DNA from: Piromyces finnis finn
Lineage: Eukaryota > Fungi > Neocallimastigomycota
Reading direction: 5' to 3'
Assembly: GCA_002104945.1 (NCBI GenBank)
Contig: MCFH01000032.1
Coordinates: forward strand, 541,915 to 605,914
Length of the DNA: 64,000 nucleotides
Positions 1 through 22,329 of the stretch are shown here, piece after piece. The notes under the pieces are model-generated. The model was not told the DNA's origin. It did not search any database and worked only from the letters and a program-made list of their open reading frames with translations. The position numbers and the translations under genes are program-made. Positions within the stretch are counted from its first letter, which is position 1, and every line of letters begins with the position of its first letter.

Positions 1-3000
1 TCCTATTATTATCGACTATGATGAAGAAGAAATGTTGTCTGCAATTACAGATAAGAAAGGTGCTAAGGTGGTAGAGAAAGATAACACAAGTGAATCAACC
101 AAATCTACTTCTAATTCAACTCTAAATAAATTAATGAAAGAGCAAAAGAAAGAAAAACCTGCAGAATCGAAGGTTAAGAAAACTGCTAGAAATATTCAAA
201 TGATAGCAGATACGGAAGAATATAATGTAGTTAAAGATCTTAACGAAACAAAATGCAATATTACTTTTGGTCAATTACTTAACTCGGCTCCAAAGTTACG
301 AACGCAAGTGTCACAAGGTCTTAAACTGGAAAAGAACAACACAAAAATTGTGGGAGCTCTGGAGAATTTTAATGCTACTTCGGTATTAGTAAATAATGTA
401 GATCATTCGTATGTAAGCAAAAGTAAAGAAGTATCAGAAGAAGATATCGCTATGGTAGATGCAACGGTTGATGGGGTACCAGGTAAATTATTAGTTGATT
501 CCTGTAGCAACTTAAGTATTATAACAAAAAAATATTTAGATAAACTTCCCCATCAATATGAATCTATTGGATTGAGTTGTGGAAGAATACGTTTAGCTAC
601 TAAAAATGATGACTATTCGGAAGGCATAATTATTAGAGTACCGGTCCAGATAAATGATCTTACAATCACTGCTGATTTTAGAGTGGTGGATAAAGAAGAC
701 CCCTTTTATGATATGTTAATTAATTTGAAAACCCAAATGGATAACAACTTATTTATCCACCCACTTCGCTATAGTCTTTGCAGATTTAATTCAAATGGAT
801 TTATTGAAGATATTGCTCCAATTAATAACAAATATGATGATGAAGAAAAGATTATGTGTATGATACGTAGAGTCGGTGATGAAGATTTTAAAAGTGATTT
901 GAAAAATATTGAAGGTTTACCACCTTCAGAATATATTCACAATAAAAATTTTACTGAGACTCTTAATGAAAAGTATCGAGAACAAATTGTTCGGATATTG
1001 GAAGAGAATATTGAAATTATTGCTACTTCTTCTGAAGAACTAACACCTTCGAATTTAACTCCCCATAAGATTAATTTAAAGCCAGGAGCAAAGCCAATTA
1101 AACAAAGATCATATAGGTTAGCCAAGTTCAAATCTGATATACTTAAGGAAGAATTGTCTAAATTGATTAATAAAAAGCTAATTGAGCCATCGTACTCGGA
1201 ATGGTCTTCTCCGGTGGTTTTGGTCCCGAAGCATAATGGGAAATGGAGAATGTGCGTGGACTATCGAAGAGTTAATGATTTGTCTGAAAAGGATGCCTAT
1301 TCAATTCCTTTTATAGATGAGATATTTGATAGTTTACATGGTGCAACTATATTCACTACTATGGACTTATATTCCGGCTATCATCAAATCCTTATGGATG
1401 AAGAAAGCGTTGAATTGACAAGTTTTACAACTAAGTTTGGAAATTACCAATTCAAGGTTATGCCTTTTGGTCTCACTGGAGCACCCGCTACATTTCAGAG
1501 GGAGATGAATCGGATTCTGTTTCCGTTAATTGGAAAGTGTGTTTATAACTTCATTGATGATATTCTGATCTATTCAAAGAGTATTGAAGAACATATTGAA
1601 CATATAAATCAAGTTTTAGCAATTTTCCGGGAAAACAAACTAAAAATCAATATTGAAAAATGTCATTTTATGCAAACTGAAGTTGACGTGTTAGGCCATC
1701 GTTTAACTACAGAAGGTCTTAAACCATTAGATAACAAAATCCAAGCTATAAAAAATTGGAAACCTCCTTCGAATATCCATGAATTAAGATCATTCCTAGG
1801 TTCAATTGGATATTATAGAGATTTTATTCCTAATTATGCTAAACTTACTGCTCCCTTGTGTAAGCTGCTTAGAAAAGGTGTTCCTTTCAAATGGTGTAAT
1901 GAACAACAAGAGAGTTTTATTATATTGAAAGAAAAGTTAATTAATGCGCCTATTCTGAAATTCCCTGATTTTGAGAAAGAATTTATAATCCGAACAGATG
2001 CATCGTATGAAGGAATCGGAGGAGTATTATTACAAAAGGAAGGCACAGATATTGAACATCCAATTCATTATATTAGCCGAAGTCTGACGAAAGCAGAAAA
2101 AAATTATGGAATTACTGACTTGGAAGGGACTGCCTTATTTTACTGCATTACTAAATTAAAGCCTTATATAATGGGAAGTCCATTCAAGACTATCGTCTAT
2201 ACTGATCATAAACCATTAATTGGATTATTTAAAAATAAGGAGCCAAACAATGCAAGACAAACAAGATGGTGTTTAACAGCTAGTATGCTAGGAGTTGATA
2301 TTCGTTATGAACAAGGTAAAAAGAATGTTGTAGCAGATGCACTGTCTCGAATGAGAAATGACAAAGATAAGGAAGTGTTAGCTACTAAAATTAATAAAGG
2401 TATAGAAGAAACCATGCTATCTAAGGTAATTAAAGAATTTGTTGAAGAAAAGTTCACCAAAATAGATGGGGTGGATTACTTTATTGATGGAAGGAATTAT
2501 CGAAAACTGATCACGGAAACCAATGAAAAGCTGAAATTGATTTTGGAAGCTCATAACATTGGACATGAAGGATATTATAAAACTTATCAACGTCTGAGAA
2601 AAAGCTATTATTGGAACGACATGGTTAATGATATTCGAAGAGTTGTAGCCAAATGTGAAAAATGCCAACTTAATCGCCCTCAACCATATCCAGAACCTAC
2701 GGAAAATCTTCCAACTGAGGTTGAAGCTCCTTTCACTCATCTGGGTTTAGATATCATTGGTCCATTGGTAAAAACTCGTAACAATAACCAATATATTATA
2801 GTTGCAGTGGATCATTTCACAAAATGGGTCGAAGCAGAACCCACCGAAAATATCACTTCAAAGGATGTCATAAAATTTTTAATCAATGTTTTCTCTCGGC
2901 ATGGAGTACCACAAGTCATTACAACCGATAACGGTGTCCAATTTACCTCAGATATGACCAAAGTTTTCCTGGACTTATATGATGTCTATGTCAAGTTTGT

Positions 3001-3571
3001 CTCAACTTATCATCCTGAAAGTAATGGTTTGACTGAAAATAGAAACAAAGAAATTGGAAAGCTTCTAAGACTGCTTGGAAAAGAAAACAAGGATTGGGAT
3101 GAAATTTTGCCTTCTGCTCTTTGGGCGCTCAGAACTACTAAAAATACTGTCACAAACCATTCTAGTTTTGAATTGGTTTATGGAAGAGAAGATCAGCAAC
3201 CCTTTGATATTGCCGCCAGACCTACTAAGGGTATTAATCAGTCTTCGGATGAAATCTTACTTGAGAAGTTTATTAATCATTACAGGTGGACGTTGGAAGC
3301 TTGTGAAAATATTAAAAATGCGAATAAATACTGGGCTACTAGAAGGGAAGAAAAACAAAGTATGACTAAGGGCAAAAATATCCATATCGGTGATCTAGTA
3401 TTAGTTAGAAATTTTAATCGAACGAAGTTAGAGCCTTATTTCGTTGGACCACTCAAAGTTGTCAAGAAACAATTCAATACTGTTACTTTAGCTGATATAT
3501 CCACTGGAATTCAGATGAACCGAAATGTTCATCTTAAGAATATTGTAAAGTTTAACTCTGCTTTTGCGTAA
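1..3571 (+). CDS. pol: Ty3/Gypsy element A Pol (protease-RT-RNase H-integrase, no chromodomain); frame is open beyond the left edge
   Basis: ORF 32..3571, with no stop in frame back to position 2. Motifs: protease-like LLVDSCSN; RT WRMCVDYR...YNFIDD; RNase H RTDASYEG; integrase HX3H...CX2C, GLDIIG, TDNG, GLTENRN. Clearly homologous to 26707..30225. Confidence 0.95.
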   Translation, partial: PIIIDYDEEEMLSAITDKKGAKVVEKDNTSESTKSTSNSTLNKLMKEQKKEKPAESKVKKTARNIQMIADTEEYNVVKDLNETKCNITFGQLLNSAPKLRTQVSQGLKLEKNNTKIVGALENFNATSVLVNNVDHSYVSKSKEVSEEDIAMVDATVDGVPGKLLVDSCSNLSIITKKYLDKLPHQYESIGLSCGRIRLATKNDDYSEGIIIRVPVQINDLTITADFRVVDKEDPFYDMLINLKTQMDNNLFIHPLRYSLCRFNSNGFIEDIAPINNKYDDEEKIMCMIRRVGDEDFKSDLKNIEGLPPSEYIHNKNFTETLNEKYREQIVRILEENIEIIATSSEELTPSNLTPHKINLKPGAKPIKQRSYRLAKFKSDILKEELSKLINKKLIEPSYSEWSSPVVLVPKHNGKWRMCVDYRRVNDLSEKDAYSIPFIDEIFDSLHGATIFTTMDLYSGYHQILMDEESVELTSFTTKFGNYQFKVMPFGLTGAPATFQREMNRILFPLIGKCVYNFIDDILIYSKSIEEHIEHINQVLAIFRENKLKINIEKCHFMQTEVDVLGHRLTTEGLKPLDNKIQAIKNWKPPSNIHELRSFLGSIGYYRDFIPNYAKLTAPLCKLLRKGVPFKWCNEQQESFIILKEKLINAPILKFPDFEKEFIIRTDASYEGIGGVLLQKEGTDIEHPIHYISRSLTKAEKNYGITDLEGTALFYCITKLKPYIMGSPFKTIVYTDHKPLIGLFKNKEPNNARQTRWCLTASMLGVDIRYEQGKKNVVADALSRMRNDKDKEVLATKINKGIEETMLSKVIKEFVEEKFTKIDGVDYFIDGRNYRKLITETNEKLKLILEAHNIGHEGYYKTYQRLRKSYYWNDMVNDIRRVVAKCEKCQLNRPQPYPEPTENLPTEVEAPFTHLGLDIIGPLVKTRNNNQYIIVAVDHFTKWVEAEPTENITSKDVIKFLINVFSRHGVPQVITTDNGVQFTSDMTKVFLDLYDVYVKFVSTYHPESNGLTENRNKEIGKLLRLLGKENKDWDEILPSALWALRTTKNTVTNHSSFELVYGREDQQPFDIAARPTKGINQSSDEILLEKFINHYRWTLEACENIKNANKYWATRREEKQSMTKGKNIHIGDLVLVRNFNRTKLEPYFVGPLKVVKKQFNTVTLADISTGIQMNRNVHLKNIVKFNSAFA

Positions 3572-3594: not shown

Positions 3595-4305
3595 TGTTAA
3601 GGAACCAACAAATAATGTTATTCTTGTCATAATTAATGATTATGACCTAATCCATTCATTATTGTTCCTAAATGTATGAAAACTTTACAATATTCTTATT
3701 TGTAAATTAATGTATACACTTAAATTATATTTAAAATTATTAATAATTATTTTTTATTGAACTTAAATTTTATTTTATTAAACTTAAAAATTAATTTAGT
3801 AATAATAATATATTGAAAATTATAGTTTATTGAACTTTTAGTTTAATTTATCAAGTTAATGAATTTTTATTAATTAAAATTATGAATAATATTTCTGTAA
3901 AATAGTAAAATTTTTTAGTTAAATATATTTAAAGTAAACTTTTAATGTATGTTAATCAATTTAATAATATGTATAAATATTCATTATAATAGTAATGTAA
4001 TTTTATTATTCATTTAAAAGTAATTTAAATACTAAAATTAATGTAAATAATTAAAGACTAATTCTTTTAATTAACACTACTTAATTTTTTACAAAAAGTA
4101 TAAAAAGGTGTATATTATAAGAATTAGAAAATATACAGATATTTTTATTTTTATTTTTATTTTATTTTATAATTTTATATTAATATCTTAATAAAACAAT
4201 TTTATTAATAAAACAATTTTTCTTATTTCATTTTAATATTATTTTTGAGTATTAATAAATTTATTAATATTTTATAAATAAAAGTAAATTCCTCGAACCG
4301 TAACA
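3595..4305 (+). mobile_element. 3' LTR of Gypsy A (711 bp)
   Basis: Begins TGTTAAGGAA right after a G-rich PPT (gtggggg, 3584-3590) and ends CGAACCGTAACA. Termini resemble the D/E LTRs. Followed by GATT. Confidence 0.85.
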
Positions 4306-5219
4306 GATTTGTTAAGGAATGAACATAAATAGTTGAATTAGCTAGAATTTTAGGAATTAATGTGAAGATATTAACTGGATTTAAAACAAATTCAGATAAT
4401 ATCTATAATTAATTAAACATAATAATTATAATTAAATAATTTCAATAATTATTTTAAAACACTTTTAAAAGTCACCTTTTAAATTTTGATTCAGTGAAAG
4501 GGTTATGATTTCAAAAATTTAATATCAATATACTATAACCCTTAACCAAAAATAAGCAAGTACGAAATAAGGTGTAACTCGCCAAAAACGATCGCTACGG
4601 CTGTAAGTGCTACGGTGATGAAACTAGGTTTATTGGAAAGCTTAGGAAGAAAGCTACAATTTGGTACAATCGCGGTCCTTCTAACTGATCATTTAAGGAA
4701 GTTATGATCATTTAAAGATTTTATTAGGTAAATTAAAATCAATATGATATCAAGTATGGATCATAAATATTTCTTATGACTTGATGAAATTAAAAATATA
4801 TCAATAGGAATTTTAGTTATATTAATTTAATTAATGATAACGATTGTTACTAAAAATAGAACTAGACCCATTTAGGTGTAACAGTTAATACCTATAAATT
4901 AAATAATCTTAATTATTATAAAATAGGTTAACGGCAAGTTTTATTAGAAATAATTTTGAAAATAATAATTATTTAGTTATAACAAATATGTTATGGTAAT
5001 ATCAATTAATAATGATGAATTATTAATTGAATAGTTTTTATAATTACTAATTAGGATCAACTGTTTAAATGATTAATCATATGTTTATTTTATTTTATGT
5101 CATGACAAACAAACAAACAAACAAACAAACAATCTTATTACTTATTTAATTATATTACTAATATATTATATGTAATACTTTATTCTTATTAATATCAATT
5201 TAATAATCTGAACAAAGAA

Positions 5220-5268
5220 TATAAAAGAGAATGAATTGAATTCGATTTTAATTCTTTGTAAAGATTAT
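5220..5268 (+). promoter_or_regulatory. Putative TATA box and transcript start of element B
   Basis: TATAAAAG at 5220-5227 lies 38 nt before GTAAAGATTAT (5258-5268), which is the perfect complement of the PBS. Confidence 0.65.
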
Positions 5269-5493
5269 AGTTATAATCTTAATTATATAGTTACTTATAA
5301 TATCATTTATATTATTATTAAATAAATAAAAAATTTATAAAAAGTTATTTTAAAGTAAATATAAATTTTTCATTTTTCATTTGGGAGTTTAAGGTGTTAT
5401 TTTATAATTAAATTTAATTTCTTAAAAAACATTTTTACTATATAATTAATAACATTCTGACCTGGCCGCATAACCAAACCCAAAAACTTAACA

Positions 5494-5504
5494 ATAATCT
5501 TTAC
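5494..5504 (+). other. Self-priming primer-binding site of element B (Tf1-type)
   Basis: ATAATCTTTAC directly follows the 5' LTR. It is not a TGG-type tRNA PBS and is exactly complementary to 5258-5268. Confidence 0.8.
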
Positions 5505-5528
5505 CCGCTGTTTAGTGGCTACTTTAGA

Positions 5529-6554
5529 ATGTTCACTCCGGTTCCTAATTTCCCAGACGAGGTAAACCAACTAAGAGAGGATGCTACTCAGACTGCCAAG
5601 GATATCATTGAGGGTATCAATGAAAATTTGGTTTTCCGTGAAGATTTTCAAAATTTTTCCAATGATGTGAATAATCGTTTAAATGAAATCATGAGTGTAT
5701 TAACCAATATGAATAATAATCAAACTGCTCAGAATGAAGATGAACAACCATTGTTACATACCAATTATGATAGGATAGCTACTCCAAGACCTACTGTCTT
5801 TAGAGATGATGAATCTACTTCAACAAGGTTTGATTTGGATCATGATGTTATCATGAGAGGCCGTTTTGCTACTCCAATCACTCAAGTGCCAGATCCAGGT
5901 ATGTTCTCCGGTAAGACTAGTGATACCGATTTGTTTTGTCAATTATGTGAAGATACTTTCAAAACTCTACCAAATCGAACTTTACCAGAAGAAACAAAAA
6001 TTAATTTTGTACAATCCCGTCTTCGTGATGCTGCTAGAAATTGGTATCTTGCCAAGTACAAGGATAATATTTATCCATCTACCATGCAAGAATTGTTGGA
6101 TGGACTAAGAATTGCTTTCTCAAATGTTGCTAGTTACAAGATAGCTAAAATCAAAATAATGCGTTTAAAACAACAATATGGTAAAATAAATGATTATATC
6201 GAGGAATTCCGCTCTCTTTCACAACAATTTAAATGGAATGAAGAAGCATTATCTTTAATTTTTTATAATGGTTTACATCCCAAATATCAGGAAGAAATTG
6301 AAAAGATGGAGGTATTTCCAACCACCATGGAGTCCATTATAACTAGATGTATTTTGATCGAAAGTTCTCTTTCTACAAAGAATAAGATTAACCAGTCTTC
6401 CAACTCTAAATCTAACAAGAAAAGAAATTCACATTTCAACCACCACAGATCATACAACAACAACAACAACAATAACAACAATAACTTCCAAAAATATAAT
6501 AATAATTACAATAACAACAATTATAAAGCTCAAAAAATTAGTTCAAAAAACTAA
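5529..6554 (+). CDS. gag: Element B Gag (retrotransposon gag domain, Asn-rich C-terminus, no CCHC knuckle)
   Basis: 341-aa ORF just after the PBS, with gag-like segments FSGKTSDTDLF...ARNWY and LRIAFSN...LKQQYGKINDYIEEF. Confidence 0.9.
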   Translation: MFTPVPNFPDEVNQLREDATQTAKDIIEGINENLVFREDFQNFSNDVNNRLNEIMSVLTNMNNNQTAQNEDEQPLLHTNYDRIATPRPTVFRDDESTSTRFDLDHDVIMRGRFATPITQVPDPGMFSGKTSDTDLFCQLCEDTFKTLPNRTLPEETKINFVQSRLRDAARNWYLAKYKDNIYPSTMQELLDGLRIAFSNVASYKIAKIKIMRLKQQYGKINDYIEEFRSLSQQFKWNEEALSLIFYNGLHPKYQEEIEKMEVFPTTMESIITRCILIESSLSTKNKINQSSNSKSNKKRNSHFNHHRSYNNNNNNNNNNFQKYNNNYNNNNYKAQKISSKN

Positions 6555-6577
6555 ATAAAGGACTTCCATTGAAGTCC
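6545..6577 (+). other. -1 ribosomal frameshift signal of element B
   Basis: Slippery A AAA AAC (6545-6551) immediately before the gag stop, an 8-nt spacer, then hairpin GGACTTC-CATT-GAAGTCC. The -1 frame is the open pol frame. Confidence 0.8.
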
Positions 6578-9500
6578 CATCACCACTCGAATACAAAAAT
6601 ATTAAACTACACTTTTCCCACTATCAACAAAGATAATACATTACCTTCAACGTTTTTTACTTTTAATACATATGTATTATCCAATAATGGAGGTACAAAT
6701 AATGTACATAATAAAATTGCATGTACATCACTATTAGATAGTGGATCTTATTGTAATTTTATGTCGTACAAACTATTACGTACATTACAATTACATCCTC
6801 ATAAAATTAATAATGTTATCACTGTACAAGGTATCAGTGGTACTTCAATTGAACTTGATGAATATATCAACCTAAACTTTCAGTTAAAACTATTTATCAA
6901 CAATAAATTCCATTTCATCAATTTCAAAGAAAAATTTTTACTAGCGGATTATATTCCGACAGATTTATTATTTGGAAATATATTCATGTCCAAATATGAA
7001 ATTCATTATAATTATAATAAAAATTATTTATATTCAAATTTAAAATATGATTTTAACAGAAAGAAATTCAATATGAAGCATGCTACTAAATTTTTAAAAT
7101 TAGAACAATTCATTTCTTATAATAGAAATGACATAAATGTTACACCTACCACTTCTACAGGTGTAAATAACACAAAAAATAAAAATAAAAATTATTCCAC
7201 CAATTTTTATAATTTAAAAAATAAAATTCATAATTTTTATTTCAGATCTAAAACCTTTAGTAAGAAGAAAAATGGTCGATTTCACAAATTTAACCCTAAA
7301 CGTTCCAAATTTTTTAGAAAAGTTATATTAAATAAAAATAATTATGATAGATATAATTATAATTATTTAATTCATACTTTTTTGTCCGAAAAACCAGAAG
7401 AAGTAAGCAATTTAGAAGAACATACTATTGAGGATATTCCAAAACCCTATCGAGATTTGGCAAAAGTTTTCAGCAAACAAGAAGCTGATAAACTACCATC
7501 ACATAGAATTACAGATTGTAAAATAGTACTAGAAAAAGATGCTACTCTTCACTATGGTCCCATCTATCCCTTATCAGAAGAAGAATCAAAAGTTTTAGAA
7601 GAGTATATCAAGGAAAATTTAGAAAAAGGCTTTATTAGACCATCCGAATCACCTGCAGGATATCCAGTGGTATTTCAGAAAAAGAAAGATGGTACTCTTA
7701 GAGTTTGTATTGATTATAAAAAACTCAATTCTGTAACGATACGTAACTCCTACCCAATACCACTTATTACCGACATTATAGAACGTGTCAAAGGTGCAAA
7801 GTATTTCACCAAGCTCGACTTACGCTCTGCTTATAATTTAGTTAGAATAAGAAATGATGATGAATATAAAACTGCTTTTCGCACAAAGTTTGGTCACTAT
7901 GAATATTTAGTGATGCCATTTGGTTTACGTAACGCTCCTGCTACTTTTCAGGCATTTATAAATTCTGTTCTCAGACCTTTCTTGGAAAAATCTGTTATTC
8001 TCTATTTGGATGATATTCTTATATTTTCAAAAACCTTAGAAGAACACCACCAACATGTACGTGAAGTTCTTTCTAAACTATTAGAAAATAATTTATATGC
8101 TAAACTTCCTAAATGTGAATTTGACAAACCACAAGTTGAATTCTTAGGATATGTTATTTCAGGTTCAGGAATTGCTACCGACCCAAAAAAGATAGAGTCA
8201 ATCAAAAATTGGCCTATTCCTACTACAGTTAAGGATGTACAAAGATTTTTAGGTCTTTGTAACTACTATAGACGCTTTGTAATGAATTTTGCAGACTTGG
8301 CTAAACCCCTCCACAACCTAACAAAAAAGAATGCAAAGTTCAAATGGTCCACAGAATGTGAATCCTCATTTAACATTTTAAAAACGCGTTTAACTTCAGC
8401 ACCTATTTTATCACATCCTGATCCTCAAAAACAATATATTTTAGAATGTGATGCAAGTAATGTTGCTATCGGTTCTATACTTTCTCAATATGATTCAGAA
8501 AATCGTCTACATCCTGTTGCTTACTACTCCAGAAGTCTAAGTAGTTCTGAAGTTAATTATTCTATAACAGATAAAGAACTATTAGCCATTAAGGATTCTT
8601 TCTCTACTTGGAGGCACCTTCTTCTTGGTGCTAAATATAAAATAAAAGTTTACACTGATCATAGAAATTTACTTTATACTCTTGGAGGAAAGGTAGGTAA
8701 TCAAAGACAACATCGTTGGCACCTTTTCTTTCATGAATACGACTTTGAACTTATATACAGACAAGGTCGTAAGAATGGTAAACCTGATTGTCTATCTCGC
8801 AGACCTGACTACATGGATAGGACTTATGAAGAAAAGCCAGAATATATTTTAGACTCAAAAAATGTAAAACTAATACCAAGTTTCATTGGTATTATGAGTA
8901 ACTTCTTGGAACAAGTTATTCAATACTTAAAGGACGACGAAACTGCTAAGGATATTATGCTATATTTCAGCCCACATAATGACCAAAAGGCTTATAGACC
9001 ATTTAGGAAAATGAACAAGTTTGAATTAAAAAATAATCTTATTTTATATAATAACTTAGTTTATATCCCTGAGAAACTACGTTTAGATGTTCTTATGAAA
9101 TATCATGAACAACCCTCTGCTGGACATCTTGGTATAAAAAGGACTTTAGAATTGATAACTCGAAATTTTTGGTGGCCTAAAATTAAGGATGATGTCACTA
9201 AATTTGTTAATTCTTGTGAGACATGCACAAGAAATAAAGTAACTAGACATCGGAAATATGGAAAATTACAACCTTTAGATACTCCAGAACGTCCATGGAA
9301 ATCTATAGAAATTGACTTTCTTTGTGGCCTTCCTGAGTCTAAAGGGTACACCGTAATTATGGTAGTGGTTGACCGCTTTTCTAAAATGATTCACTTAGTG
9401 CCGTTTAAACAAGTTCCAAACGCAGCACAAACTGCAAAAGCTTTTTTGAACAATGTATATCGTTTACATGGTCTCCCTTATGACCTATATACTGATAGAG

Positions 9501-10366
9501 GCTCACAATTTACAAGTGATGTTTGGCTCGAATTTTTGGATTTATTATATATTCATCCAAGAATAGCTACTACTGACCACCATGAAACTGTTGGACAGGT
9601 CGAGAGGTCAAATTCTTTTATTGAACAGTATCTTAGATGTTATTCCAAGTCTTTCTATCATGACGACTGGGTTGATTGGCTTCCACTTGCAGAATTCGCC
9701 TATAACAACGCTGTTAATGAATCAACCAAAGAAACACCATTCTTCATTAATTATGGTTTCCACCCTCCGATGGATGAAATGACCCTATTACCACAATGTA
9801 ATATTAATCATAAACTAGTTCAAAACGTTAATGATGCATTCAACCACATAAAAGAAGTGTTACTACGCTCCAAAGAGTTGTATAAAAGAAGAGTGGATAA
9901 AAGTCGTTTAGAAGCTCCAAAATTTAAAATTGATGATTTAGTTTGGATTCAAGCCCCACCTTCTCTAAATATTGAAAATAGTTCCAAATTAGCTCCTTGT
10001 AAATATGGTCCATATAAAATAACTCAAGTTTTGAGAAATAACAATTATGAAATCGATATCAAAAAATCACCTTTTCCCAAACACTATCCAATATTTCATG
10101 TATCTGAGTTGGAACCTTATAGATCAACTCCAAAAGAATTTTTAAATAGAACTGCGGATCCAGAATCAATAAAAGATATAGTGGAAATATCTGGATTCCG
10201 TACAAATTATAAACAACAACGATATGAATATAAAATTCGATACAAATACCGTTCCGCTTATAATTGGGTACCAGCAAGTGAAGTAGAAGACAATCCACGT
10301 AATCAATACATTTATCAAAAATATTTAAAAAGTGGACGACATTATGCTTCTATAGCATATAATTAA
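6545..10366 (+). CDS. pol: Element B Pol (protease-RT-RNase H-integrase-degenerate chromodomain)
   Basis: ORF 6569..10366 is open back to the slip site. Motifs: LLDSGS, YLDD, ECDAS, integrase HHCC/DDE, GPY motif, and a C-terminal chromodomain-like segment (YEYKIRYK...WVPASEV). Confidence 0.95.
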   Translation, partial: KKLNKGLPLKSHHHSNTKILNYTFPTINKDNTLPSTFFTFNTYVLSNNGGTNNVHNKIACTSLLDSGSYCNFMSYKLLRTLQLHPHKINNVITVQGISGTSIELDEYINLNFQLKLFINNKFHFINFKEKFLLADYIPTDLLFGNIFMSKYEIHYNYNKNYLYSNLKYDFNRKKFNMKHATKFLKLEQFISYNRNDINVTPTTSTGVNNTKNKNKNYSTNFYNLKNKIHNFYFRSKTFSKKKNGRFHKFNPKRSKFFRKVILNKNNYDRYNYNYLIHTFLSEKPEEVSNLEEHTIEDIPKPYRDLAKVFSKQEADKLPSHRITDCKIVLEKDATLHYGPIYPLSEEESKVLEEYIKENLEKGFIRPSESPAGYPVVFQKKKDGTLRVCIDYKKLNSVTIRNSYPIPLITDIIERVKGAKYFTKLDLRSAYNLVRIRNDDEYKTAFRTKFGHYEYLVMPFGLRNAPATFQAFINSVLRPFLEKSVILYLDDILIFSKTLEEHHQHVREVLSKLLENNLYAKLPKCEFDKPQVEFLGYVISGSGIATDPKKIESIKNWPIPTTVKDVQRFLGLCNYYRRFVMNFADLAKPLHNLTKKNAKFKWSTECESSFNILKTRLTSAPILSHPDPQKQYILECDASNVAIGSILSQYDSENRLHPVAYYSRSLSSSEVNYSITDKELLAIKDSFSTWRHLLLGAKYKIKVYTDHRNLLYTLGGKVGNQRQHRWHLFFHEYDFELIYRQGRKNGKPDCLSRRPDYMDRTYEEKPEYILDSKNVKLIPSFIGIMSNFLEQVIQYLKDDETAKDIMLYFSPHNDQKAYRPFRKMNKFELKNNLILYNNLVYIPEKLRLDVLMKYHEQPSAGHLGIKRTLELITRNFWWPKIKDDVTKFVNSCETCTRNKVTRHRKYGKLQPLDTPERPWKSIEIDFLCGLPESKGYTVIMVVVDRFSKMIHLVPFKQVPNAAQTAKAFLNNVYRLHGLPYDLYTDRGSQFTSDVWLEFLDLLYIHPRIATTDHHETVGQVERSNSFIEQYLRCYSKSFYHDDWVDWLPLAEFAYNNAVNESTKETPFFINYGFHPPMDEMTLLPQCNINHKLVQNVNDAFNHIKEVLLRSKELYKRRVDKSRLEAPKFKIDDLVWIQAPPSLNIENSSKLAPCKYGPYKITQVLRNNNYEIDIKKSPFPKHYPIFHVSELEPYRSTPKEFLNRTADPESIKDIVEISGFRTNYKQQRYEYKIRYKYRSAYNWVPASEVEDNPRNQYIYQKYLKSGRHYASIAYN

Positions 10367-12717
10367 TTAAAATAATATTAATAAGTCAATAATTCTCTAA
10401 AAATAACTTTTACACCATTTACAAAATATTTTTATAACAACTAAATTTCGAAATTTAACTCATCACAAAATTTTGAAATTTCAACATTTCAAAAATTTTT
10501 ACACCGAATATTTTTCAATTATCATATTAAAACTTTATTATTTTTTATTTTTATTTTCATATTCAAAATCTGCAGTATCAATTTTATTATTAAAATTTTA
10601 CCTACAAGAAAATTTTTCAAAAAGTGAAATTTCAAAAATCTCACAATGGCCAAGTGACCTTTTGAAATTATTACTTCCTCTCGAAAAAATTTTTTTAAAA
10701 TCAAAAATTTTTACTTTTCGCTCCAGTTCATAGAATTCGTCTGGAATACGAATTCCTAGGGAGGGCGTTGTGAAGATATTAACTGGATTTAAAACAAATT
10801 CAGATAATATCTATAATTAATTAAACATAATAATTATAATTAAATAATTTCAATAATTATTTTAAAACACTTTTAAAAGTCACCTTTTAAATTTTGATTC
10901 AGTGAAAGGGTTATGATTTCAAAAATTTAATATCAATATACTATAACCCTTAACCAAAAATAAGCAAGTACGAAATAAGGTGTAACTCGCCAAAAACGAT
11001 CGCTACGGCTGTAAGTGCTACGGTGATGAAACTAGGTTTATTGGAAAGCTTAGGAAGAAAGCTACAATTTGGTACAATCGCGGTCCTTCTAACTGATCAT
11101 TTAAGGAAGTTATGATCATTTAAAGATTTTATTAGGTAAATTAAAATCAATATGATATCAAGTATGGATCATAAATATTTCTTATGACTTGATGAAATTA
11201 AAAATATATCAATAGGAATTTTAGTTATATTAATTTAATTAATGATAACGATTGTTACTAAAAATAGAACTAGACCCATTTAGGTGTAACAGTTAATACC
11301 TATAAATTAAATAATCTTAATTATTATAAAATAGGTTAACGGCAAGTTTTATTAGAAATAATTTTGAAAATAATAATTATTTAGTTATAACAAATATGTT
11401 ATGGTAATATCAATTAATAATGATGAATTATTAATTGAATAGTTTTTATAATTACTAATTAGGATCAACTGTTTAAATGATTAATCATATGTTTATTTTA
11501 TTTTATGTCATGACAAACAAACAAACAAACAAACAAACAATCTTATTACTTATTTAATTATATTACTAATATATTATATGTAATACTTTATTCTTATTAA
11601 TATCAATTTAATAATCTGAACAAAGAATATAAAAGAGAATGAATTGAATTCGATTTTAATTCTTTGTAAAGATTATAGTTATAATCTTAATTATATAGTT
11701 ACTTATAATATCATTTATATTATTATTAAATAAATAAAAAATTTATAAAAAGTTATTTTAAAGTAAATATAAATTTTTCATTTTTCATTTGGGAGTTTAA
11801 GGTGTTATTTTATAATTAAATTTAATTTCTTAAAAAACATTTTTACTATATAATTAATAACATTCTGACCTGGCCGCATAACCAAACCCAAAAACTTAAC
11901 AATTAACCTTCAACTATTTATATTCCTTACTAGTGTTTAACTCTATTTTTAAAATATAAAAATTATAATATATAATTTTTATACATTTTTCTAGTAATTA
12001 TTAATATTTTTATTATATAGTTATATTATTTGTATATAGTTATTTAAGACCTTTATTATTAGTATTAGTATAATTACTTATAATATTTTATACTTATAAA
12101 TTTTATAAAATTTTATTATTAAAATAGTTATAGGTATTTTATTATTATTTAAGGTTTATTTTATTAATTAACTTTATTGTATAATATTTTATAATTTGAA
12201 ATTATGACATAGAATTTAATTATAATTTTTACTAAAAGAGGCAACTGTTACACACAAAACAGAAGATACCTCGACAGAAAAATTATTATTTATGTCTAAA
12301 AAAGGGCATAATTAATTGAATAATATAATTTTATTATATGTCATAATTAAATATATAATATATGATATGCAAAAATGTTACACATATCATAAATTAAAAT
12401 TTTATTAATTATAAATTAAAAATTTTTCTATTCAAATATTAAGAGATTATTCATAATATATATTAAGGATTTAATTAATATATGTTACAGTGAATGATCC
12501 ATATATTATAAATGAAATCAATTTAAATCCTTAGCTATCCAAAACCATTAAATTTCAAATAATGGATAGTTGGAAAAAGTACGAGGATTTTTGAGAAAAT
12601 TTTTAAAAATTGAAAAATCAAAAATAAATTAAATGAATAAAAATTAAAATTAAATAAATTTTTATTTTTATAACTATTCAAGTGTTTTGTGATATCTTAT
12701 TTGAACCGTAGCAGATT

Positions 12718-13268
12718 TGATACGTTACCTCTATAAAAATAAGAAATTAGCATAAATTCTAGGTAAAAAGTAATTTAGGTTAGAAAATAGTAATAATATA
12801 ATATTGTAGAATAAATTATTAATGTACATTAATGTACATAGTCAATAATAGTAATAATAATTCTAATAATATAGCGGAGTTATAGGAAAAATGATATAAA
12901 AATAGTATAAAAAGAACAAAGAGAAAAAAAAAAAAAGGAATAATTAGTTTGGAAGAATATTTTGGAAGAGAATTATTTAAAGGAGTTAAATAATTCTATT
13001 AGGTTATATTATTTGTTCTTAAATATAAATTATTCTTATTCTTTTAATTGTAAAAAACCTTTCATTCATTAATTATAAATAAAGATTGAAGATATAACAA
13101 AAATATTATATAAATTACATGTTTCTTTCTTTCTATTTTACTTATTAAAAGTATTGAAATTGTTATTATTAATTTCCTTTATTAGAATATATTATTTTAT
13201 AATTCCCTATTTGCTTTGTCCTAAAATAAATAAATTATTTTGTGGTACTTTATGAAAATATTGTATCA
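12718..13268. mobile_element. Solo LTR-like element G1 (551 bp)
   Basis: Begins TGATACGTTA and ends GTATCA. Flanked by GATT (12714-17) and GAT (13269-71). Shares its first 10 nt with G2 at 22148. Confidence 0.7.
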
Positions 13269-13271
13269 GAT

Positions 13272-14026
<755 letters not shown>

Positions 14027-15101
14027 GATTTGATAAAGAATGAAATTTATAAATAATGAATTAATAGAATAGCTGATTTTAAAATTATATAAACTTAATA
14101 TAAATTAAAATAATAGTAAATAATCAAAATAATATAAAATATAAATGTTTAATTAAATTTTAAAAATGTAAAATAGAAACAACTTTTGTTTATAAACAAA
14201 CTTAAATGTAATTATTTATTATAAATAGAAATAGAAAATATTATTTTTAAAGATTGTTACTAATTAGCCAGGAAAATTAGAATATTTTAAAATTATAATA
14301 AATTAATATATTTTTTTTTTATAATACATAGCGAGATGTATTATACATTTATTTTTGTAAAGAAATGTGTCTTTAACAATAAAACAAATTATAATATTTA
14401 CTAAATAACTTAGTAATATTAACACTTTAAAATATTCTGTAAATTATTAATTTATAAAAATATCATTAAAAACACATAGAATTTAACTTAATAAGTTAGT
14501 GTTTAATAATATAATTATTTATTAATAAAATCTCGATTCTTTAAAATATTTGGGAAAATTCACTCGTATTTATACTAAAAATTTTTTAAATTAATTTATA
14601 AAATTTTTTCAACTTAAAATTCTTAACCAATCAATAATCTTCATATAAAATAAAATTTAAAAATAAAATAAAATAAAATAAAATTATAATTTTTTTAAAA
14701 TAGTATCTATGAGGTCTCGAACTAGTGTCATTCAGAACCAAAGTCTTAGCTACTAACCACTAAGACAATTTAGTTATTTCTAGTATTCGTTACATGGTCC
14801 TCCTCCAGGATTCGGATACCAGACGAATCTAGAATTTTAATATTTAAATATATGTTTTTCTTTTTTAATAAACTAAACTAAGGAGTGAATTTTCTTAATT
14901 ATAAAAATACATTTAATATAATAAAATACATTTTTTTTTTAATATTACTAAAGTTAAAAATAAAATATTGATAAATTTGATATTAATAAATTGTTTAATA
15001 ATAAAATTGATATTGATAATGATATTAATAAGTTTTGATAATAATAATAATTGTGATTTTAATATTAATAATAAATATAATTTGAATTTTTTAACTATTT
15101 T

Positions 15102-18100
15102 TTATTTCTTTCTATTAAATTTTTTAAGTAGCCCCTTGCAATTTAGATTTTCTTCAGGCTCCCACGAAGCTTCATTGATTGAATACCCTTTCCATTTAAT
15201 CAGGTATTGTATTTTTCCGTAATGTCTTCTTTTATCCAGAATTTCTTCAACTTCGTATTCTTCTTCATTGTCAACGGTAATAGGTGGCGGTGGTGGTTGA
15301 GATCTTCCAAATTTATCTTCGACATATTTCTCAAGATTGGATACATGAATAACTGGATGAATCTTAATAGATTTTGGGAGACTTAATTTAAATGTAACAT
15401 TTGATATTTTTTCCAAGATTTTGTATGGGCCGAGTTTTCTTGGCTTAAATTTTTTATTTCCTTTGTGGATAATTAAAGAACTATCCAGCCAAACTTTGTC
15501 ACCAACTTTAAAATTCGGAGCTTCTTTTCTACGTTTGTCAGCATGCTTCTTCTGGGTTTCCATGGCAGATTTTAAATTTTCTTTTAAGGTATTAATTAAA
15601 GTTTTAAAATCTCTTGTAAACTCTTCTGCTCTTGGGACTTTAGATAAGTCTGGAATAACTGGTGAATATTTTGGATGAAAGCCGTAATTCAAAAAGAATG
15701 GAGAAAATTTGGATGATTCTTGGACCACGTTGTTATAACTAAATTCTGCAAGACTAAGAAAACTTTTCCAATTTGAACCTTTATAATTTGAGAAACATCT
15801 TAAATATTGTTCTATAACGGAGTTCACCCTCTCCGTCTGACCGTTTGATTGATGATGAAATGGAGTAGACAACTTAAGTTCAATGCCAAGGGAGGAACAG
15901 ATGGATTGGAAGAATTTAGAGGTAAATTGAGAACCTCTATCCGAGACAATAGATTCAGGTAGGCCATGAAGACGGAAAATATTATCAATAAAGGCTGTGG
16001 CTGTTTCGGCGGCGGAAGGAATACTTTTGAACGGAATGAGATGAACCATTTTTGTAAGACGATCAACAACAACAAGAATGCAAGTGAAACCAGAAGATGA
16101 AGGCAAATCTGTAATGAAATCCATTGAAATGGATGACCAAGGACGCTCAGCAATATCAAGAGGATTCAGAAGACCATAAGGTTTATGACGAAAGGTTTTT
16201 GAACGACAACAAACTTCACAAGAACGAACGTAGTCTTTAACATCAGAAGAAATAGAAGGCCACCAGAAGTCTCTAGCAATAAGAGAAGATGTTTTCTTTA
16301 TTCCGAAATGACCAGCTGAAGGAGAGTCGTGACAGAGTTTAAGAATTGAAAGACGACAATTTGGAGGAACATAGATTCTGTCAGTAAAAAGGAGAAAACT
16401 ATTGCTTAAGGAAAATTTGTCAATTTGAGGGTGAGGTATTGGAGGTTTCCTACAATCAAGATATTCACAGATTTTATTGTAAAAGTCATCATTTATATAT
16501 TCGGAAAGAAAAGAATCACTAATGGACGAAACAGAAGTCACAATGGCACAAAAGTTTTCAGGGCGAAGAACATTAAAAGGAACATCAGAAGAGGAATTCG
16601 AATTGATAGCATAATCAGGACGACGAGATAGAGCATCAGGCTTACCGTTAGAAGAACCAGAACGATAAATAATAACAAAGTTAAATTCAGAGAGAAACAA
16701 AGCCCAGCGAACAAGACGTTGAGACATTTTTTCAGGTTTCTTTTGATAGAGTAAATTTCGATGATCCGAGTAAATCTTAAAAGTAGAAGAAGAGCCTTTA
16801 AGTAGATGACGCCATGTTTCAAGAGCAGCAACGATAGCTAAGAGCTCTTTATCATATATTGGATAATTACGTTCAGGACCAGTAAGAGAGCGAGAAAAGA
16901 AAGCAACTGGATGGGTCATATTATCAATTGGAGAGACTTGCGAGAGAATAGCACCAATGGCAAAGTTACTTGAATCAGTTTCGACTATGAATGGAAGTTC
17001 ACGATTAGGAAATATAAGAACAGGAGCAGAAACAAATAAGGACTTGAGTGAATCGAAAGCATCTTGAGCTTCTTTAGACCATACAAATTTAACATTTTTC
17101 TTCAAAAGTTTATGCAAAGGATGAGCGATCTTTGCAAAATTTGGAATAAATCGACGGTAGTAGTTCGCAAGACCAAGAAAAGATTGAACCTCTTTAACAT
17201 TAGATGGAGTAGGCCAGTTTAAAATAGAAGAAACTTTATTTGGGTCCATGTGAATACCATCAGTAGAAATCCTATGACCAAGGAAATCAATAAAAGAAAC
17301 AAAAAACTCGCATTTTTCCAATTTAGCATAGAGCCCAGCATCCCTCAGGAGTTTCAAAACAGTTTTGACATGAGAAATATGAGATTTATAATCCGAGGAA
17401 AAAATAATAATATCATCTATGTAAGAGAAAGCGAATTTACCAAGAACGTCTTCAAGAACATCATTAATGAAATGTTGAAAAACAGCAGGTGCATTTTTCA
17501 ACCCAAAAGGCATCACACAGTATTCAAAATGACCTAACTTGCAAGTAAAAGCGGTTTTATATTCATCACCACTTTTAATCCTGACCAAGTTATAGGCAGA
17601 ACGAAGATCCAATTTTGAGAAAATCTTCCCTTTTCCAAGATGTTCAAGCATATCTTGTATAAGAGGAAGGGGATAAGAATCACGAATAGTTATGGAGTTT
17701 AATTGGCGATAGTCAACACACATACGAAGTTGACCGTTTTTCTTAGGTACAAACAGAATAGGAGCTCCCGCAGGCGATTTTGATTTTCTAATAAATCCTT
17801 TCTTGAGATTTTCTTTTATATATTCTTCTAAAGCAATTGATTCGGTTTCTGTTAGAGGATAAATCGGTCCATAAAACAATTTTGAATTTTCTTTGAGTTT
17901 TATTTCACAATCGTATGGACGGTGTGGAGGAAGTTTTTCAGCATTAGATTCATTGAAGACATCAGCAAAGTCAGAGAGAACATCCGGAAGTATAATAGAA
18001 GAATTGGGTTCTGATTTAGAGTTTGAATCGGATTTGAGAATAGAATTGGAATGAATATTAGAATCAGAAAAAGAAGTCAAAACAGAAGTTGGTTCTTGAT

Positions 18101-19544
18101 TTGAGAGAGACGAAGTAGAAAAGTTAACAGAAGACTTCTTAGAAACAGAATTGTTAATATTTTTTGAAGAACCCGAACAGAGAATAGTACAAGTACGATT
18201 AGTTTCGTTTTGAGATTGGATGTTTTGTTTATCGACAAATATAGGGTAAGCGAATGAATCATGCGGAGGTTCGTAGGAAGGATCTTCCATTGCAGGAAAA
18301 GCAGATCTTTCTTCAGGAAATTCAGAGACATTATTGGAGAGTGTTATACAACGATTATAACAGTAATCGGATACAAATGAAATTTTGTTCTTTGTGAAAT
18401 CGATAGAAGGATTGTGTTCTTTAAGCCAGTCTATTCCAAGAATACAAGGATAATAAGGTAGATCAGTTACATAGAATTGTGTTCGACAGAGATGATCTTT
18501 GTAGCGAAGATTCAAAGGAGATGTAATTCCAAAAAGAGATTGTCGACCACCGATACCAACGATATTTGGGAGGTTACCATCATCATGATAAGGAATGTTA
18601 TTATCGTTACAGTAATCTACATCAATTAAATTAAGTTTGGATCCTGAGTCAATAAGAATATCCGTATTTAGTTCATAAGAAAGTTTAAATTTAGTTGTCA
18701 TTTTATTATGAGTTTTGTTTTCTTCTTTAGGAGCGGATATAAGTGTGGGAATAGATATTAGTGAAGGATTTTCACGATCTTTATTCTTTCTTTTTGGACA
18801 ATTATTAATCTTATGACTTGAAGCACCACAATACACACAAAGATTTTCTTTCTTTCTTCTTTCCTTTTCTTCGTTTGAGATAGGGCCATGGTTATTCCTG
18901 TTTGTAATGGACTTTGTTATTTTTGAAGAGTGATGAAAAGATCTTTTCTTTCGGTTTTGGTCATTGTTTGAACCAGAAGGGAAAAAGGTATGGTGTGTAG
19001 ATAATCTTGAATCGATTCTTGAAGCAATAGTCTGTAATGAAAGAAGATCCCTAGGACCCGGAAACATTTCCAAAATACGAACTGCAACTTGTTGATTAAG
19101 GCCAGCTATAAATGCATCCATTTTGGCTTGTTCATTCCAGTTTGATTCATCAGCATAGCGGTTAAATTCCAAGATATAGCCTCTAATTCCTCCTAATCGG
19201 CGTTGTTTTAAGGTTCTAAGCATTTGATTTGCAACATAGGTAGCATCGTTATAACCATAAAAAGCCTTAAATCTGTCAACAAAAGCTTGGTAGTTATTAA
19301 GACACGGATCATGGTTGTTTATAAGAGTAGCAGCCCAATTCATAGCGTCCCCATAAAGTCTTGATATTATATAGAGAATTTTGGTTGCGTCGTCTTGATA
19401 CCGTTCAGGATATAGCATAAACACTAGCTCCACCTTAGCTAAGAAACCCTTCAGATACCTGCGATCCCCTGCAAAACCATCCTTAAGAGTTGCGTTTTCG
19501 AAAATATTATTATTATCCATGTGGTTGTTTTCGTTCTCTTCCAT
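15102..19544 (-). CDS. gag-pol: Element C Gag-Pol polyprotein with canonical chromodomain (1480 aa)
   Basis: CCHC knuckle [14 protein letters not shown], protease LIDSGS, RT YIDD, RNase H ETDSS, integrase, and chromodomain [10 protein letters not shown]...YLIKWKGY...SWEPEENL. Confidence 0.97.
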
Positions 19545-20426
19545 AGTACTTATGATGTTTTCTTTAATAAGCTTTAATAAATTTGTAAAAATAATAGAAT
19601 AAAGTATTTAATTATATTTATTAATTGAGTAAATCTTTTTATTAAATAATAATATAAACCAGATTATATAGTGTTAAACCATCAAATATATAACCTGTTT
19701 TATTCTTTATAATAAGTCCTTCGTAGCTCTTCACGATAACACGTATAAAGTCGATTGTTAATATTAATTAAATTAATAAAAGAAAGGAACGGTGTAAAAA
19801 TTTTTTTTTAGTGTCTAACTTATTGTTAGCAATAAAAATTATTACAGGTTTTCTTTCCCTATATCAACCTTATCCGAACGTAGAAGTATTATGTATAAGA
19901 GTTTAACTTCTCACGCTAAAGGAGTTATAAAGAATATTATTTTATATTATTACAATTTTAATAAATTGTCTTAACAATTAATAATTATAATTAAAAATTA
20001 GAAATTGTTTTATTAGAAAACTTAATTTTAAAATGTATTAATTAAGAAATATTATTTTATTAAAGTAAGGCATTTCCGGCTATTTTCCGGTCTATAATCA
20101 AACAGCAAAAGATAGTATACAACTATAAATCTCACGCCAGCTTGCTTATTACAGCGTCTTGTACGTGGTGTACCTCGGATTCTCCTACTTCCTTATTCAA
20201 AGTAGAATAGCTCAGAGCCTGCCAACCCAATTATTGTACAGGTTAAACTCGATCCCGTTAATCTTTTACTTTTTATAGTTTGAATTATATACCGCTTCTA
20301 AAGCGTACTAATTCTACTACTTTAAGTAAAAATATTTCTTTAAAGAAAAGCTTCAACAATAAAACTTAAAAGTTTTATCTATAACAATTCCTTAAACACT
20401 AAGGTATTAAGCTTTTATATTATAAG

Positions 20427-20437
20427 GAGATTTTATT
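20427..20437 (-). other. Self-priming PBS of element C
   Basis: Minus-strand AATAAAATCTC is complementary to GAGATTTTATT inside the LTR (20605-20615). TATAAATA lies about 40 nt upstream of that site. Confidence 0.75.
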
Positions 20438-21053
20438 GTAAAGAAATGTGTCTTTAACAATAAAACAAATTATAATATTTACTAAATAACTTAGTAATAT
20501 TAACACTTTAAAATATTCTGTAAATTATTAATTTATAAAAATATCATTAAAAACACATAGAATTTAACTTAATAAGTTAGTGTTTAATAATATAATTATT
20601 TATTAATAAAATCTCGATTCTTTAAAATATTTGGGAAAATTCACTCGTATTTATACTAAAAATTTTTTAAATTAATTTATAAAATTTTTTCAACTTAAAA
20701 TTCTTAACCAATCAATAATCTTCATATAAAATAAAATTTAAAAATAAAATAAAATAAAATAAAATTATAATTTTTTTAAAATAGTATCTATGAGGTCTCG
20801 AACTAGTGTCATTCAGAACCAAAGTCTTAGCTACTAACCACTAAGACAATTTAGTTATTTCTAGTATTCGTTACAATTTTAAATAAATAAACTAATATTA
20901 TAAAACAAGATGTATTTTTAAAACTTTAAATTATATTTAATAATTATATACTTGTAGAATGTTCAAGTAAAAATAAGTCATTCAAATACACACCAAATAT
21001 ACCACTTTCTAAGCTTATTTAGAATTAAGGTATATTTGAACGTGTGTCAGATT

Positions 21054-21108
21054 AATAAATAATGAAATTAATAAATATATAATTATTATTATACCTGATT
21101 TTTAAGTT
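21054..21108 (+). repeat. 55-bp flank duplicated in inverted orientation at 25086..25140
   Basis: 54/55 identity to the reverse complement of 25086..25140. Each copy directly abuts the last 4-bp TSD of an insertion stack. Confidence 0.9.
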
Positions 21109-21649
21109 TTTTTTTTTTTTTTTAACTTCCGAGTGCATTTCTCCCATCGATCAGAGTTAGCTCCAATGGTGGTTCTTAGAGAAACGTTGGCTCATTCCTA
21201 TTGCTAGGTGGTTGTGACCCTCCTGGTCTGTCATACTGTTTCTTCAGCTTCGACGCTCACTTAATCCATGTACATTAGATGCATGTCGTTGTACGATATT
21301 TCACAACTACAATGCTAAGCCTCTTATAGTCAATTTGATCACGTGTCAACCGCCCCCTAATGTTTACACTTAAATTGATTAAGGAATATTATGTGTTTTT
21401 GGCATAGCCTAAGTCACCACTTATTAAGTTCTAATTTGGAATGTACCATGTACACTAGACCCTCTCAGGCCGGCTAGACGAGTGTTATTATCATAGTAGT
21501 AAATTAGAAAGTTCATTTATACTTACCTGAATATCATAACCCAACCCATGGCAAACCCAGTGGGAAAATCCACAGGCACTGACATCTGCGGGGTCGAACC
21601 AGAAGCCTTATGTATGCTAAGGAAACGCCTTAACAACCAGGATAAAAAC
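21107..21649 (-). mobile_element. tRNA(Ala)-derived SINE-like element with poly(A) tail
   Basis: Minus strand: A-box-like TGGTTGTTAAGG (21628-39), Ala(AGC)-type anticodon loop TTAGCAT (21614-20), B-box GGTTCGACCC (21591-600), a GC-richer non-coding body and an A17 tail (21107-23). No TSD found. Confidence 0.6.
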
Positions 21650-21659
21650 TGGAACGACT

Positions 21660-22092: not shown

Positions 22093-22143
22093 TCGTGTTT
22101 ATTCAGCTAGTTTTTATTATGTTTTTGTGTGAGTAGTATATCA
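22093..22143. mobile_element. Remnant end of an LTR-like element X
   Basis: Ends GTATATCA and is followed by AAAG, the spacer of the third stack. The rest is interrupted by the B-family LTR. Confidence 0.45.

Positions 22144-22294: not shown

Positions 22295-22329
<35 letters not shown>

Follow-up and report, generated by a model that had tools for sequence, protein, structure and literature searches.

An array of Ty3/Gypsy retroelements punctuated by one 4-bp duplication upstream of a tRNA-Gly gene in Piromyces finnis

We analysed a stretch of 64,000 nucleotides from the anaerobic gut fungus Piromyces finnis (Neocallimastigomycota; contig MCFH01000032.1, positions 541,915 to 605,914), hereafter the window, in which the long terminal repeats (LTRs) of several retroelement families stand end to end and are separated by the same 4-bp word, GATT. 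We conclude with high confidence that this array arose from Ty3/Gypsy insertions directed to the RNA polymerase III (Pol III) start site and piled up at a tRNA-Gly(GCC) gene. Coordinates are positions in the window, and L031 is the 10 kb immediately to its left. The tRNA-Gly gene lies in L031 (6293–6363, minus strand), 12 nt beyond the first GATT, and was absent from the initial annotation of this DNA. The 4-mer is a target-site duplication and lies outside the LTRs.

Results

A constant word between the units of the array

The order of the units outward from tRNA-Gly(GCC) is A (intact), E′, G1, F1, F3 and H, and all six are co-oriented with the start of U3 toward the tRNA gene. A GATT directly precedes the 5′ LTR of A at L031 6376–6379, which is positions −16 to −13 relative to the mature 5′ end of tRNA-Gly. 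The initial annotation had predicted this copy to the left of the window. Inside the window, direct reading of the sequence gives GATT at 4306–4309, between the end of the A LTR (CCGTAACA) and the start of E′ (TGTTAAGG), and at 12714–12717, between the end of E′ (CCGTAGCA) and the start of G1 (TGATACG). The next spacer is the 3-nt GAT at 13269–13271, one base shorter than the GATT copies elsewhere in the array, between the end of G1 (TTGTATCA) and the start of F1 (TGATAAAT). GATT follows again at 14027–14030, between the end of F1 (CGTATCA) and the start of F3 (TGATAAAG), and at 21050–21053, between the end of F3 (GTGTGTCA) and the letters AATAAAT. At this last junction the spacer itself is GAT (21050–21052), and the fourth base, T (21053), is base 1 of the H LTR.

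The spacers at 4306, 12714, 13269, 14027 and 21050 are therefore as initially annotated. Of the five units listed with them, “D” and “F3” are not single elements; both are composites with nested elements. What had been taken for flank past 21053 is the start of a sixth LTR, of family H.

GATT or GAT stands at six of six junctions, counting the GATT left of the window. The host genome is very AT-rich, and the base composition of the window gives p(GATT) = 0.0066 and p(GAT) = 0.017. The probability that three further GATT and two GAT agree by chance with the reference copy is about 1e-10. Mis-assembly, or unequal crossing-over or conversion between LTRs, might also multiply one junction, and the P. 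finnis assembly is a low-coverage PacBio assembly (PMC5622200) in which one spacer is a base short, as from a homopolymer error. However, the same anatomy occurs at dozens of loci with different words, and the junction partners come from different LTR families with no similarity beyond their termini, so that neither repeat collapse nor homologous exchange can make these junctions. We consider an artefact of this kind extremely unlikely.

Locus-specific 4-mers across the genome

The whole assembly was searched for the pattern of an A/E LTR end, four bases and TG, and 3-kb loci were taken around the matches. The search found 31 such junctions genome-wide, and their 4-mers are locus-specific (TTGT, AAAA, TCAT, TTTA, ATTC, ATTG, CATT and others). 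The same 4-mer is repeated within a locus, three times for TCAT, four times for TTTT and twice for ATTG, and it stands on both sides in 13 of 13 testable solo LTRs. CA-N4-TG junctions, which the initial annotation had proposed to look for, are thus common, with a 4-mer that is constant within a locus and varies between loci. Repeated integration at one position, each event re-duplicating the same 4 bp, had been suggested from the window alone; it is now supported by the GATT left of A, the locus-constant 4-mers and the duplications.

A rival reading is that GATT belongs to the LTR termini or is a motif recognised by the integrase. In its favour, all five window units carry the word, and the first T of both H and F1 is held in common with the spacer. 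Elsewhere, however, many other 4-mers flank these LTR families. Even within the window, element E is flanked by AATG, and the second F1 copy is followed by AATG. Because the 4-mers differ between loci for the same LTR families, GATT lies outside the LTR termini. The genome-wide junction lists exclude GATT as a general part of the termini, which the initial annotation had named as fatal to its reading, and we regard the chance that the word belongs to the elements as negligible.

Full-length A, E, G1 and H elements have TG...CA ends, LTR pairs that are 99–100% identical, 4-bp duplications, primer sites of the form TGG... located 1–7 nt past the 5′ LTR, and purine tracts. Other boundaries or 5-bp duplications in full-length relatives had been considered initially as evidence against repeated integration; the G1 and H copies keep both the TG...CA boundaries and the 4-bp duplication.

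We also sorted by eye 100 listed A/E LTR ends out of 128 matches. Another LTR begins within 1–6 nt of about 70 of these ends, after exactly 4 nt at about 42 and after 3 nt at 19, with few at 1, 2 or 6 nt. A further 12–16 stand next to an M-type LTR end, and unrecognised sequence follows about 10.

Insertion close upstream of tRNA genes

At 8 of the 30 junction loci retrieved, a tRNA gene lies 9–12 nt from the first 4-mer. We then reduced 40 high-scoring tRNA genes to 31 upstream regions by leaving out downstream dicistronic members and exact duplicates. An LTR terminus lies 11–16 nt upstream of the tRNA 5′ end in at least 24 of the 31 regions, and one more lies at 22 nt. Among the units of known polarity, 10 have their start toward the tRNA gene and 3 their end. 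Like those of Ty3, the insertions thus occupy a narrow interval directly upstream of a wide variety of tRNA genes.

Two tRNA gene pairs, tRNA-Glu(TTC)–tRNA-Arg(TCT) and tRNA-Gly(TCC)–tRNA-Thr(TGT), are close together and repeated on many contigs (L063–L097). LTR insertions were seen only at the upstream member of these pairs.

A second stack in the window, at tRNA-Glu(CTC) (32873–32944, plus strand), has the same build with another word. Its order is tRNA-Glu, 11 nt, AATG, E, AATG, P, ATG, H, AATGA and F1′. AATG therefore recurs at four junctions, of which the two around H are shortened or lengthened by one base. Including the 4-mer, the insertion distance is 15 nt at tRNA-Glu and 16 nt at tRNA-Gly. 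The proximal unit is the full-length element E (25824–32857, minus strand), with identical LTRs of 859 bp, a pol open reading frame (ORF) at 26707–30225 and a presumed gag at 30675–31595 that has no Pfam match. It is flanked by the 4-bp duplication AATG (25820–25823 and 32858–32861). Unit P (25145–25819) is non-coding, 675 bp long and carries perfect 275-bp terminal inverted repeats; its spacers are AATG on the tRNA side and ATG on the far side before H. The terminus of P recurs at other tRNA genes (L007, L017, L076 and L093). P is followed by a complete H solo LTR (24331–25141, minus strand), separated by 3 nt from its neighbour toward the tRNA and by 5 nt from the one beyond, and then by F1′ (23749–24325), which is oriented opposite and has the spacer AATGA toward H.

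A-box-like and B-box-like motifs in the M LTR as a possible additional target

The LTR of the chromovirus M, which is not one of the stacking families, carries on its minus strand an A-box-like sequence, TGTCTTAGTGG, and a B-box-like sequence, AGTTCGAGACC, each matching the consensus at 10 of 11 positions. Motif matching and spacing place the pair at 20794–20848 and at 14713–14767 (both minus strand) in the two LTRs of the window copy, and the box starts are 44 nt apart, as in a tRNA gene. An Rfam search of this stretch returned no tRNA even at E = 10. In other M-type LTR copies (for example L028, and 12–16 of the 100 listed A/E ends), A/E elements turn their start toward the box pair and are inserted at 4 bases that precede the predicted +1 by 11 nt, and this geometry is the one found at real tRNA genes. 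The 4-mers and flanks differ at every targeted locus. Since the box pair in the M LTR is struck with the same geometry as tRNA genes, promoter-bound factors would be what is recognised, and the sequences suggest that these factors, not the flanking sequence, are the target.

Family-specific registers

Among the listed A/E ends, family H begins 3 nt after the end in 14 of 14 cases, and it usually stops 5 nt before the next older LTR. These spacers, seen at 24326–25144 of the window and at loci L033–L051, indicate that the cut made by H lies one base nearer the tRNA gene than the cuts of A, E, G, J and P. A fixed offset of one base toward the tRNA would leave a 3-nt spacer before H and a 5-nt spacer after it, and a later insertion at the standard site would take the first T of H as its fourth target base. 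This register accounts for the last junction of the GATT array, where GAT is followed by the T of H, and likewise for ATG and AATGA around H in the second stack. Copies of H whose distal neighbour does not start in T (L048, L051) favour such an offset over a missing terminal T. By the same logic, H would have preceded its proximal neighbour. Family K (start TGTAAGAAAT) seems to lie about 3 nt closer still, at 11–12 nt.

A different explanation for the stacks is that newcomers home to the ends of resident LTRs, the tRNA gene having drawn the first insertion only. Most of the listed A/E ends do adjoin another LTR, and the head of the stack lies within the retrieved sequence for only a minority of the 30 junction loci. 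Yet both window stacks and eight further loci begin 9–12 nt from a tRNA gene, and the first-in-line insertions at 11–16 nt from at least 24 of the 31 sampled tRNA genes needed no older LTR. Neither the identical geometry at the box pair inside M LTRs nor the tRNA-proximal position of the intact, identical-LTR elements A and E favours homing to LTR ends, and the 3-nt and 5-nt spacers flanking H are compatible with a constant distance to the tRNA and not with recognition of LTR termini. Homing to LTR ends is in our judgement quite improbable.

The probable mechanism of stacking

All the above is best explained by the following mechanism for Pol III start-site-directed stacking. One clade, comprising A, E, G and H together with F1, F3 and P, which are represented by LTRs only, integrates about 11–16 nt upstream of the mature tRNA 5′ end through a 4-bp staggered cut. 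By analogy with other organisms, this site approximates the expected Pol III start, and the integration complex most likely selects it by docking on the TFIIIB/TFIIIC/Pol III machinery. With each insertion, one 4-bp copy would stay on the tRNA side at an unchanged distance. Because this copy is kept at the same distance, the next element would cut and duplicate the same four bases. Older units would be pushed outward and mostly collapse to solo LTRs, and some of the outer units would later take unrelated nested elements. The anchor gene, the constancy of the 4-mer, its generality in this genome and the 4-bp duplication are shown by the sequences; from them we infer a chronological order, in which the proximal unit is the youngest, as well as the protein contacts. 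The tRNA-proximal units A and E are the two intact elements of the stacks, and their LTRs are identical.

Several observations weigh against this mechanism or its details. Insertion order could not be demonstrated from private substitutions, which number 0–2 per unit in five units and show no monotonic outward rise; dating by private substitutions or by terminal branch lengths has no power here. The distances vary from 11 to 16 nt with one at 22 nt, and gaps of 1, 2, 6 or 7 nt separate some neighbouring LTRs. Orientation is biased and not fixed, as F1′ and two sampled F1 copies are reversed. No combination of registers yields the 3-nt spacer between G1 and F1 without a one-base loss; this spacer needs either such a loss or an error in a T-run of the long-read assembly. 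Finally, the integrase lacks the Brf1-contacting chromodomain of the Ty3 type, so the details of docking probably differ from those of Ty3.

The rumen and gut metagenome contigs with relatives of the elements (L057–L060), which might have shown targeting in other species, carried no tRNA genes. Alleles lacking A would have the tRNA-Gly flank followed by GATT, and no match to this exact pattern was found in metagenome contigs. Sequencing runs that contain the junction came only from the same organism and sample, with no second strain among them.

The stacking families form one pol clade

The initial annotation regarded the stacked LTR families as unrelated. Their LTRs are indeed dissimilar (A and E LTRs give no BLAST match), but the pol proteins of A, E, G and H form one clade. 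These proteins are 45–72% identical to one another and 31–34% identical to those of N and M, the two Gypsy elements nested in the array; N and M share 48–49%. The Ty3/Gypsy domain order of protease, reverse transcriptase, RNase H and integrase was found by Pfam in A, E, G and H and also in N and M. A, E, G and H have 4-bp duplications and no Pfam match to SH3_Tf2-1 or Chromo. N and M have 5-bp duplications and insert elsewhere, including within solo LTRs of the stack. Separate gag and pol ORFs encode 306 and 1172 aa in E and 253 and 1454 aa in G.

An AlphaFold model of the A integrase (a 380-residue segment; mean predicted local distance difference test score, pLDDT, of 80) shows an N-terminal extension domain (NED), a zinc-binding N-terminal domain (NTD), the catalytic core domain (CCD), a 43-residue helical linker and an SH3-like C-terminal domain (CTD). 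In this model the CTD strands end a few residues from the C-terminus, which would leave no room for a chromodomain. A fold search matched the model to the integrases of prototype foamy virus and Ty3 (7q5b) over about 400 columns.

The nearest pol relatives, up to 84% identical, are in ENA and JGI records, and the four that were retrieved are metagenome contigs. Among the 120 matches listed, named relatives came only from Orpinomyces, and neither Ty3 nor DGLT-A appeared by name.

Composition of the GATT array

Element A is full-length, about 7.9 kb, and its 5′ LTR lies left of the window (L031 6380–7090), identical at 711 of 711 positions to the 3′ LTR at 3595–4305 (plus strand; TGTTAAGG...CCGTAACA). 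The polypurine tract GTGGGGGCAC directly precedes the 3′ LTR. The pol ORF of A (32–3571, plus strand) encodes 1179 aa with the Pfam domains RVT_1, RNase H, Integrase_H2C2 and rve and no chromodomain.

E′ is an 858-bp solo LTR of family E on the plus strand, 99.1% identical to the E LTRs at 25824 and 31999. Its first 51 bp (4310–4360) match the start of the E LTR, and the remaining 807 bp (11907–12713) end in CCGTAGCA. The two parts are split by the nested full-length Gypsy element N (4361–11901, plus strand), with identical 1133-bp LTRs (4361–5493 and 10769–11901), gag (5529–6554) and pol (6569–10366) assigned from the ORF listing and Pfam, and a flanking 5-bp duplication, ATTAA (4356–4360 and 11902–11906).

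G1 (12718–13268, plus strand) is a 551-bp solo LTR reading TGATACG...TTGTATCA; its full-length relatives elsewhere in the genome are about 8.1 kb long, with identical LTRs and gag and pol ORFs. F1 (13272–14026, plus strand; TGATAAATAATT...CGTATCA) is a 755-bp solo LTR that contains an (AAT)n run, and the second copy at 23749–24325 is 97.5% identical to it.

F3 is a solo LTR of about 494 bp in two parts on the plus strand, the first 325 bp at 14031–14355 (start TGATAAAGAATG) and the last 169 bp at 20881–21049 (end GTGTGTCA). It is split by the full-length chromovirus M (14356–20875, minus strand), with identical 439-bp LTRs (14356–14794 and 20437–20875), a gag-pol ORF at 15102–19544 on the minus strand and the 5-bp duplication ATTTT (14351–14355 and 20876–20880). 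No autonomous full-length copy of F1 or F3 was found in the genome, in which each family has at least 40 copies. In the F3 match list, LTR copies often occur in same-strand pairs 1.8–2.3 kb apart; a pair of this type at locus L055 (G000:C190:74200-77400) is a 942-bp exact repeat at 2259-bp spacing. Such pairs may represent a small LTR element that is non-autonomous and relies on borrowed targeting machinery.

Only the first 58 bp of an H-family LTR remain at the outer end (21053–21110, plus strand), where a T-run cuts it off; it would be the oldest unit still recognisable in the GATT array. The H LTR is about 810 bp long, occurs in at least 42 copies at 97–99% identity and comes from elements of about 8.4 kb. 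The fragment starts with TA instead of the canonical TG, as do 5 of about 25 H copies checked, including both window copies (the others are in L037, L040 and L074); this could reflect a subfamily or a recurrent change of the terminus. The similarity of 21054–21110 to 25087–25140 at first resembled a shared, duplicated tRNA flank of the two stacks. This was rejected, as both are starts of H LTRs.

All four full-length elements A, E, N and M have LTR pairs that are 100% identical (711, 859, 1133 and 439 bp), which suggests that at least two Gypsy clades were active very recently, or that the LTRs have been homogenised.

The interval between the two tRNA genes

The two tRNA genes are divergently oriented with 36.5 kb between them, and the interval appears to be almost entirely retroelement-derived except for about 1 kb (21111–22098), which cuts off the H LTR where both stacks meet. 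This segment consists of a 16-nt T-run, about 530 bp of GC-richer sequence and a partial N-like LTR (21659–22093, minus strand). It may represent a variant LTR related to N, or else a poly(A)-tailed retrocopy. AAAG (22166–22169 and 23744–23747), the third of the repeated words, flanks an inverted G-type solo LTR (22170–23743) that holds a nested N-type solo LTR (about 22693–23697), and a fragment of another G-type LTR adjoins the left AAAG copy. The oldest part of the tRNA-Glu stack is probably this AAAG-flanked stretch, which would have a different register.

Discussion

The mechanism is of a known kind, namely Pol III start-site-directed integration of Gypsy elements, in new element families and in a new host phylum. 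Ty3 inserts in a window of a few bases about 15 nt upstream of the mature tRNA 5′ end (PMC5911963, PMC8632968), 1–4 bp upstream of the tRNA transcription start and with a 5-bp duplication, and it is positioned by the integrase CTD and a vestigial chromodomain that contact TBP and Brf1 (PMC8632968). The P. finnis elements resemble Ty3 in their insertion at the tRNA start site and in the integrase build of NED, NTD, CCD, long linker and CTD. They differ in the 4-bp duplication found in all tested copies of A, E, G1 and H, in the absence of a vestigial chromodomain after the CTD of A, E, G and H, and in the many diverged families and dozens of deep stacks, compared with a handful of Ty3 copies. 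The targeting clade scores 348 and 367 bits against the Ty3 polyprotein, whereas the non-targeting chromovirus M scores 522 bits. The targeting clade is thus no closer to Ty3 than M is, which weakly favours an independent origin of targeting.

DGLT-A of dictyostelids inserts 13–18 (up to 33) nt upstream of tRNA genes and has no chromodomain; it and its relatives occur as several subfamilies per genome with many solo LTRs (PMC5006619, PMC6101501). DGLT-A binds the TFIIIC subunit Tfc4 through RNase H and the integrase N-terminal extension (PMC6101501). By the behavioural definition of PMC5006619, the P. finnis elements are alike as chromodomain-free Gypsy elements about 15 nt upstream of tRNA genes. 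They differ in their fungal host, DGLT-A being amoebozoan, and in their separate gag and pol ORFs where DGLT-A has one ORF. Target-site duplications and stacks punctuated by a single duplication are not mentioned for DGLT-A in PMC5006619 and PMC6101501. Tj1 of Schizosaccharomyces japonicus, Tca8/beta of Candida albicans, and Tyl3, Ylt1 and Tyl6 of Yarrowia lipolytica insert 1–10 bp upstream of the tRNA start (PMC5911963, Table 1). They are likened to the present elements by this same behaviour, but all are from Ascomycota. In the full-text literature, searched with incomplete coverage, we found no tRNA-targeting elements of Neocallimastigomycota.

The initial annotation knew of no multi-family stacks at a single nucleotide. 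The position-specific stacking itself follows from targeting of the known Ty3 and DGLT-A type, and repeated insertions at one tRNA gene have already been noted for dictyostelids (PMC5006619, Table 1 footnote). A wider proposal, which we hold tentatively and with some doubt, is that start-site targeting evolved in Neocallimastigomycota, an early-diverging fungal lineage, independently of Ty3 and DGLT-A. It would then be used by several families without a chromodomain, whose integration complexes dock on the Pol III machinery in single-base, family-specific registers (H one base closer, others possibly up to three), the stacks would be ordered records of invasion, and the Pol III promoter of an unrelated chromovirus would draw the same insertions.

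How retroelements find safe sites is illustrated in textbooks by position-specific integration at Pol III start sites. To our knowledge, detailed dissection of this integration has been limited to Ty3, with DGLT-A and Tj1 covered in part. Dozens of natural stacks are available in the P. finnis genome, with several diverged families having entered at the same phosphodiester bonds. Their 3-nt, 4-nt and 5-nt spacers would serve as a base-resolution ruler of how integrases dock on the same TFIIIB/TFIIIC complex, including integrases without the chromodomain that sets the register in Ty3. For annotation, the 36.5 kb between the two tRNA genes, apart from the roughly 1 kb at 21111–22098, appear to be almost entirely retroelement-derived sequence. 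The elements extend tRNA start-site targeting beyond Ascomycota and Amoebozoa, and if the proximal unit is indeed the youngest, each stack gives a relative chronology of transposon activity.

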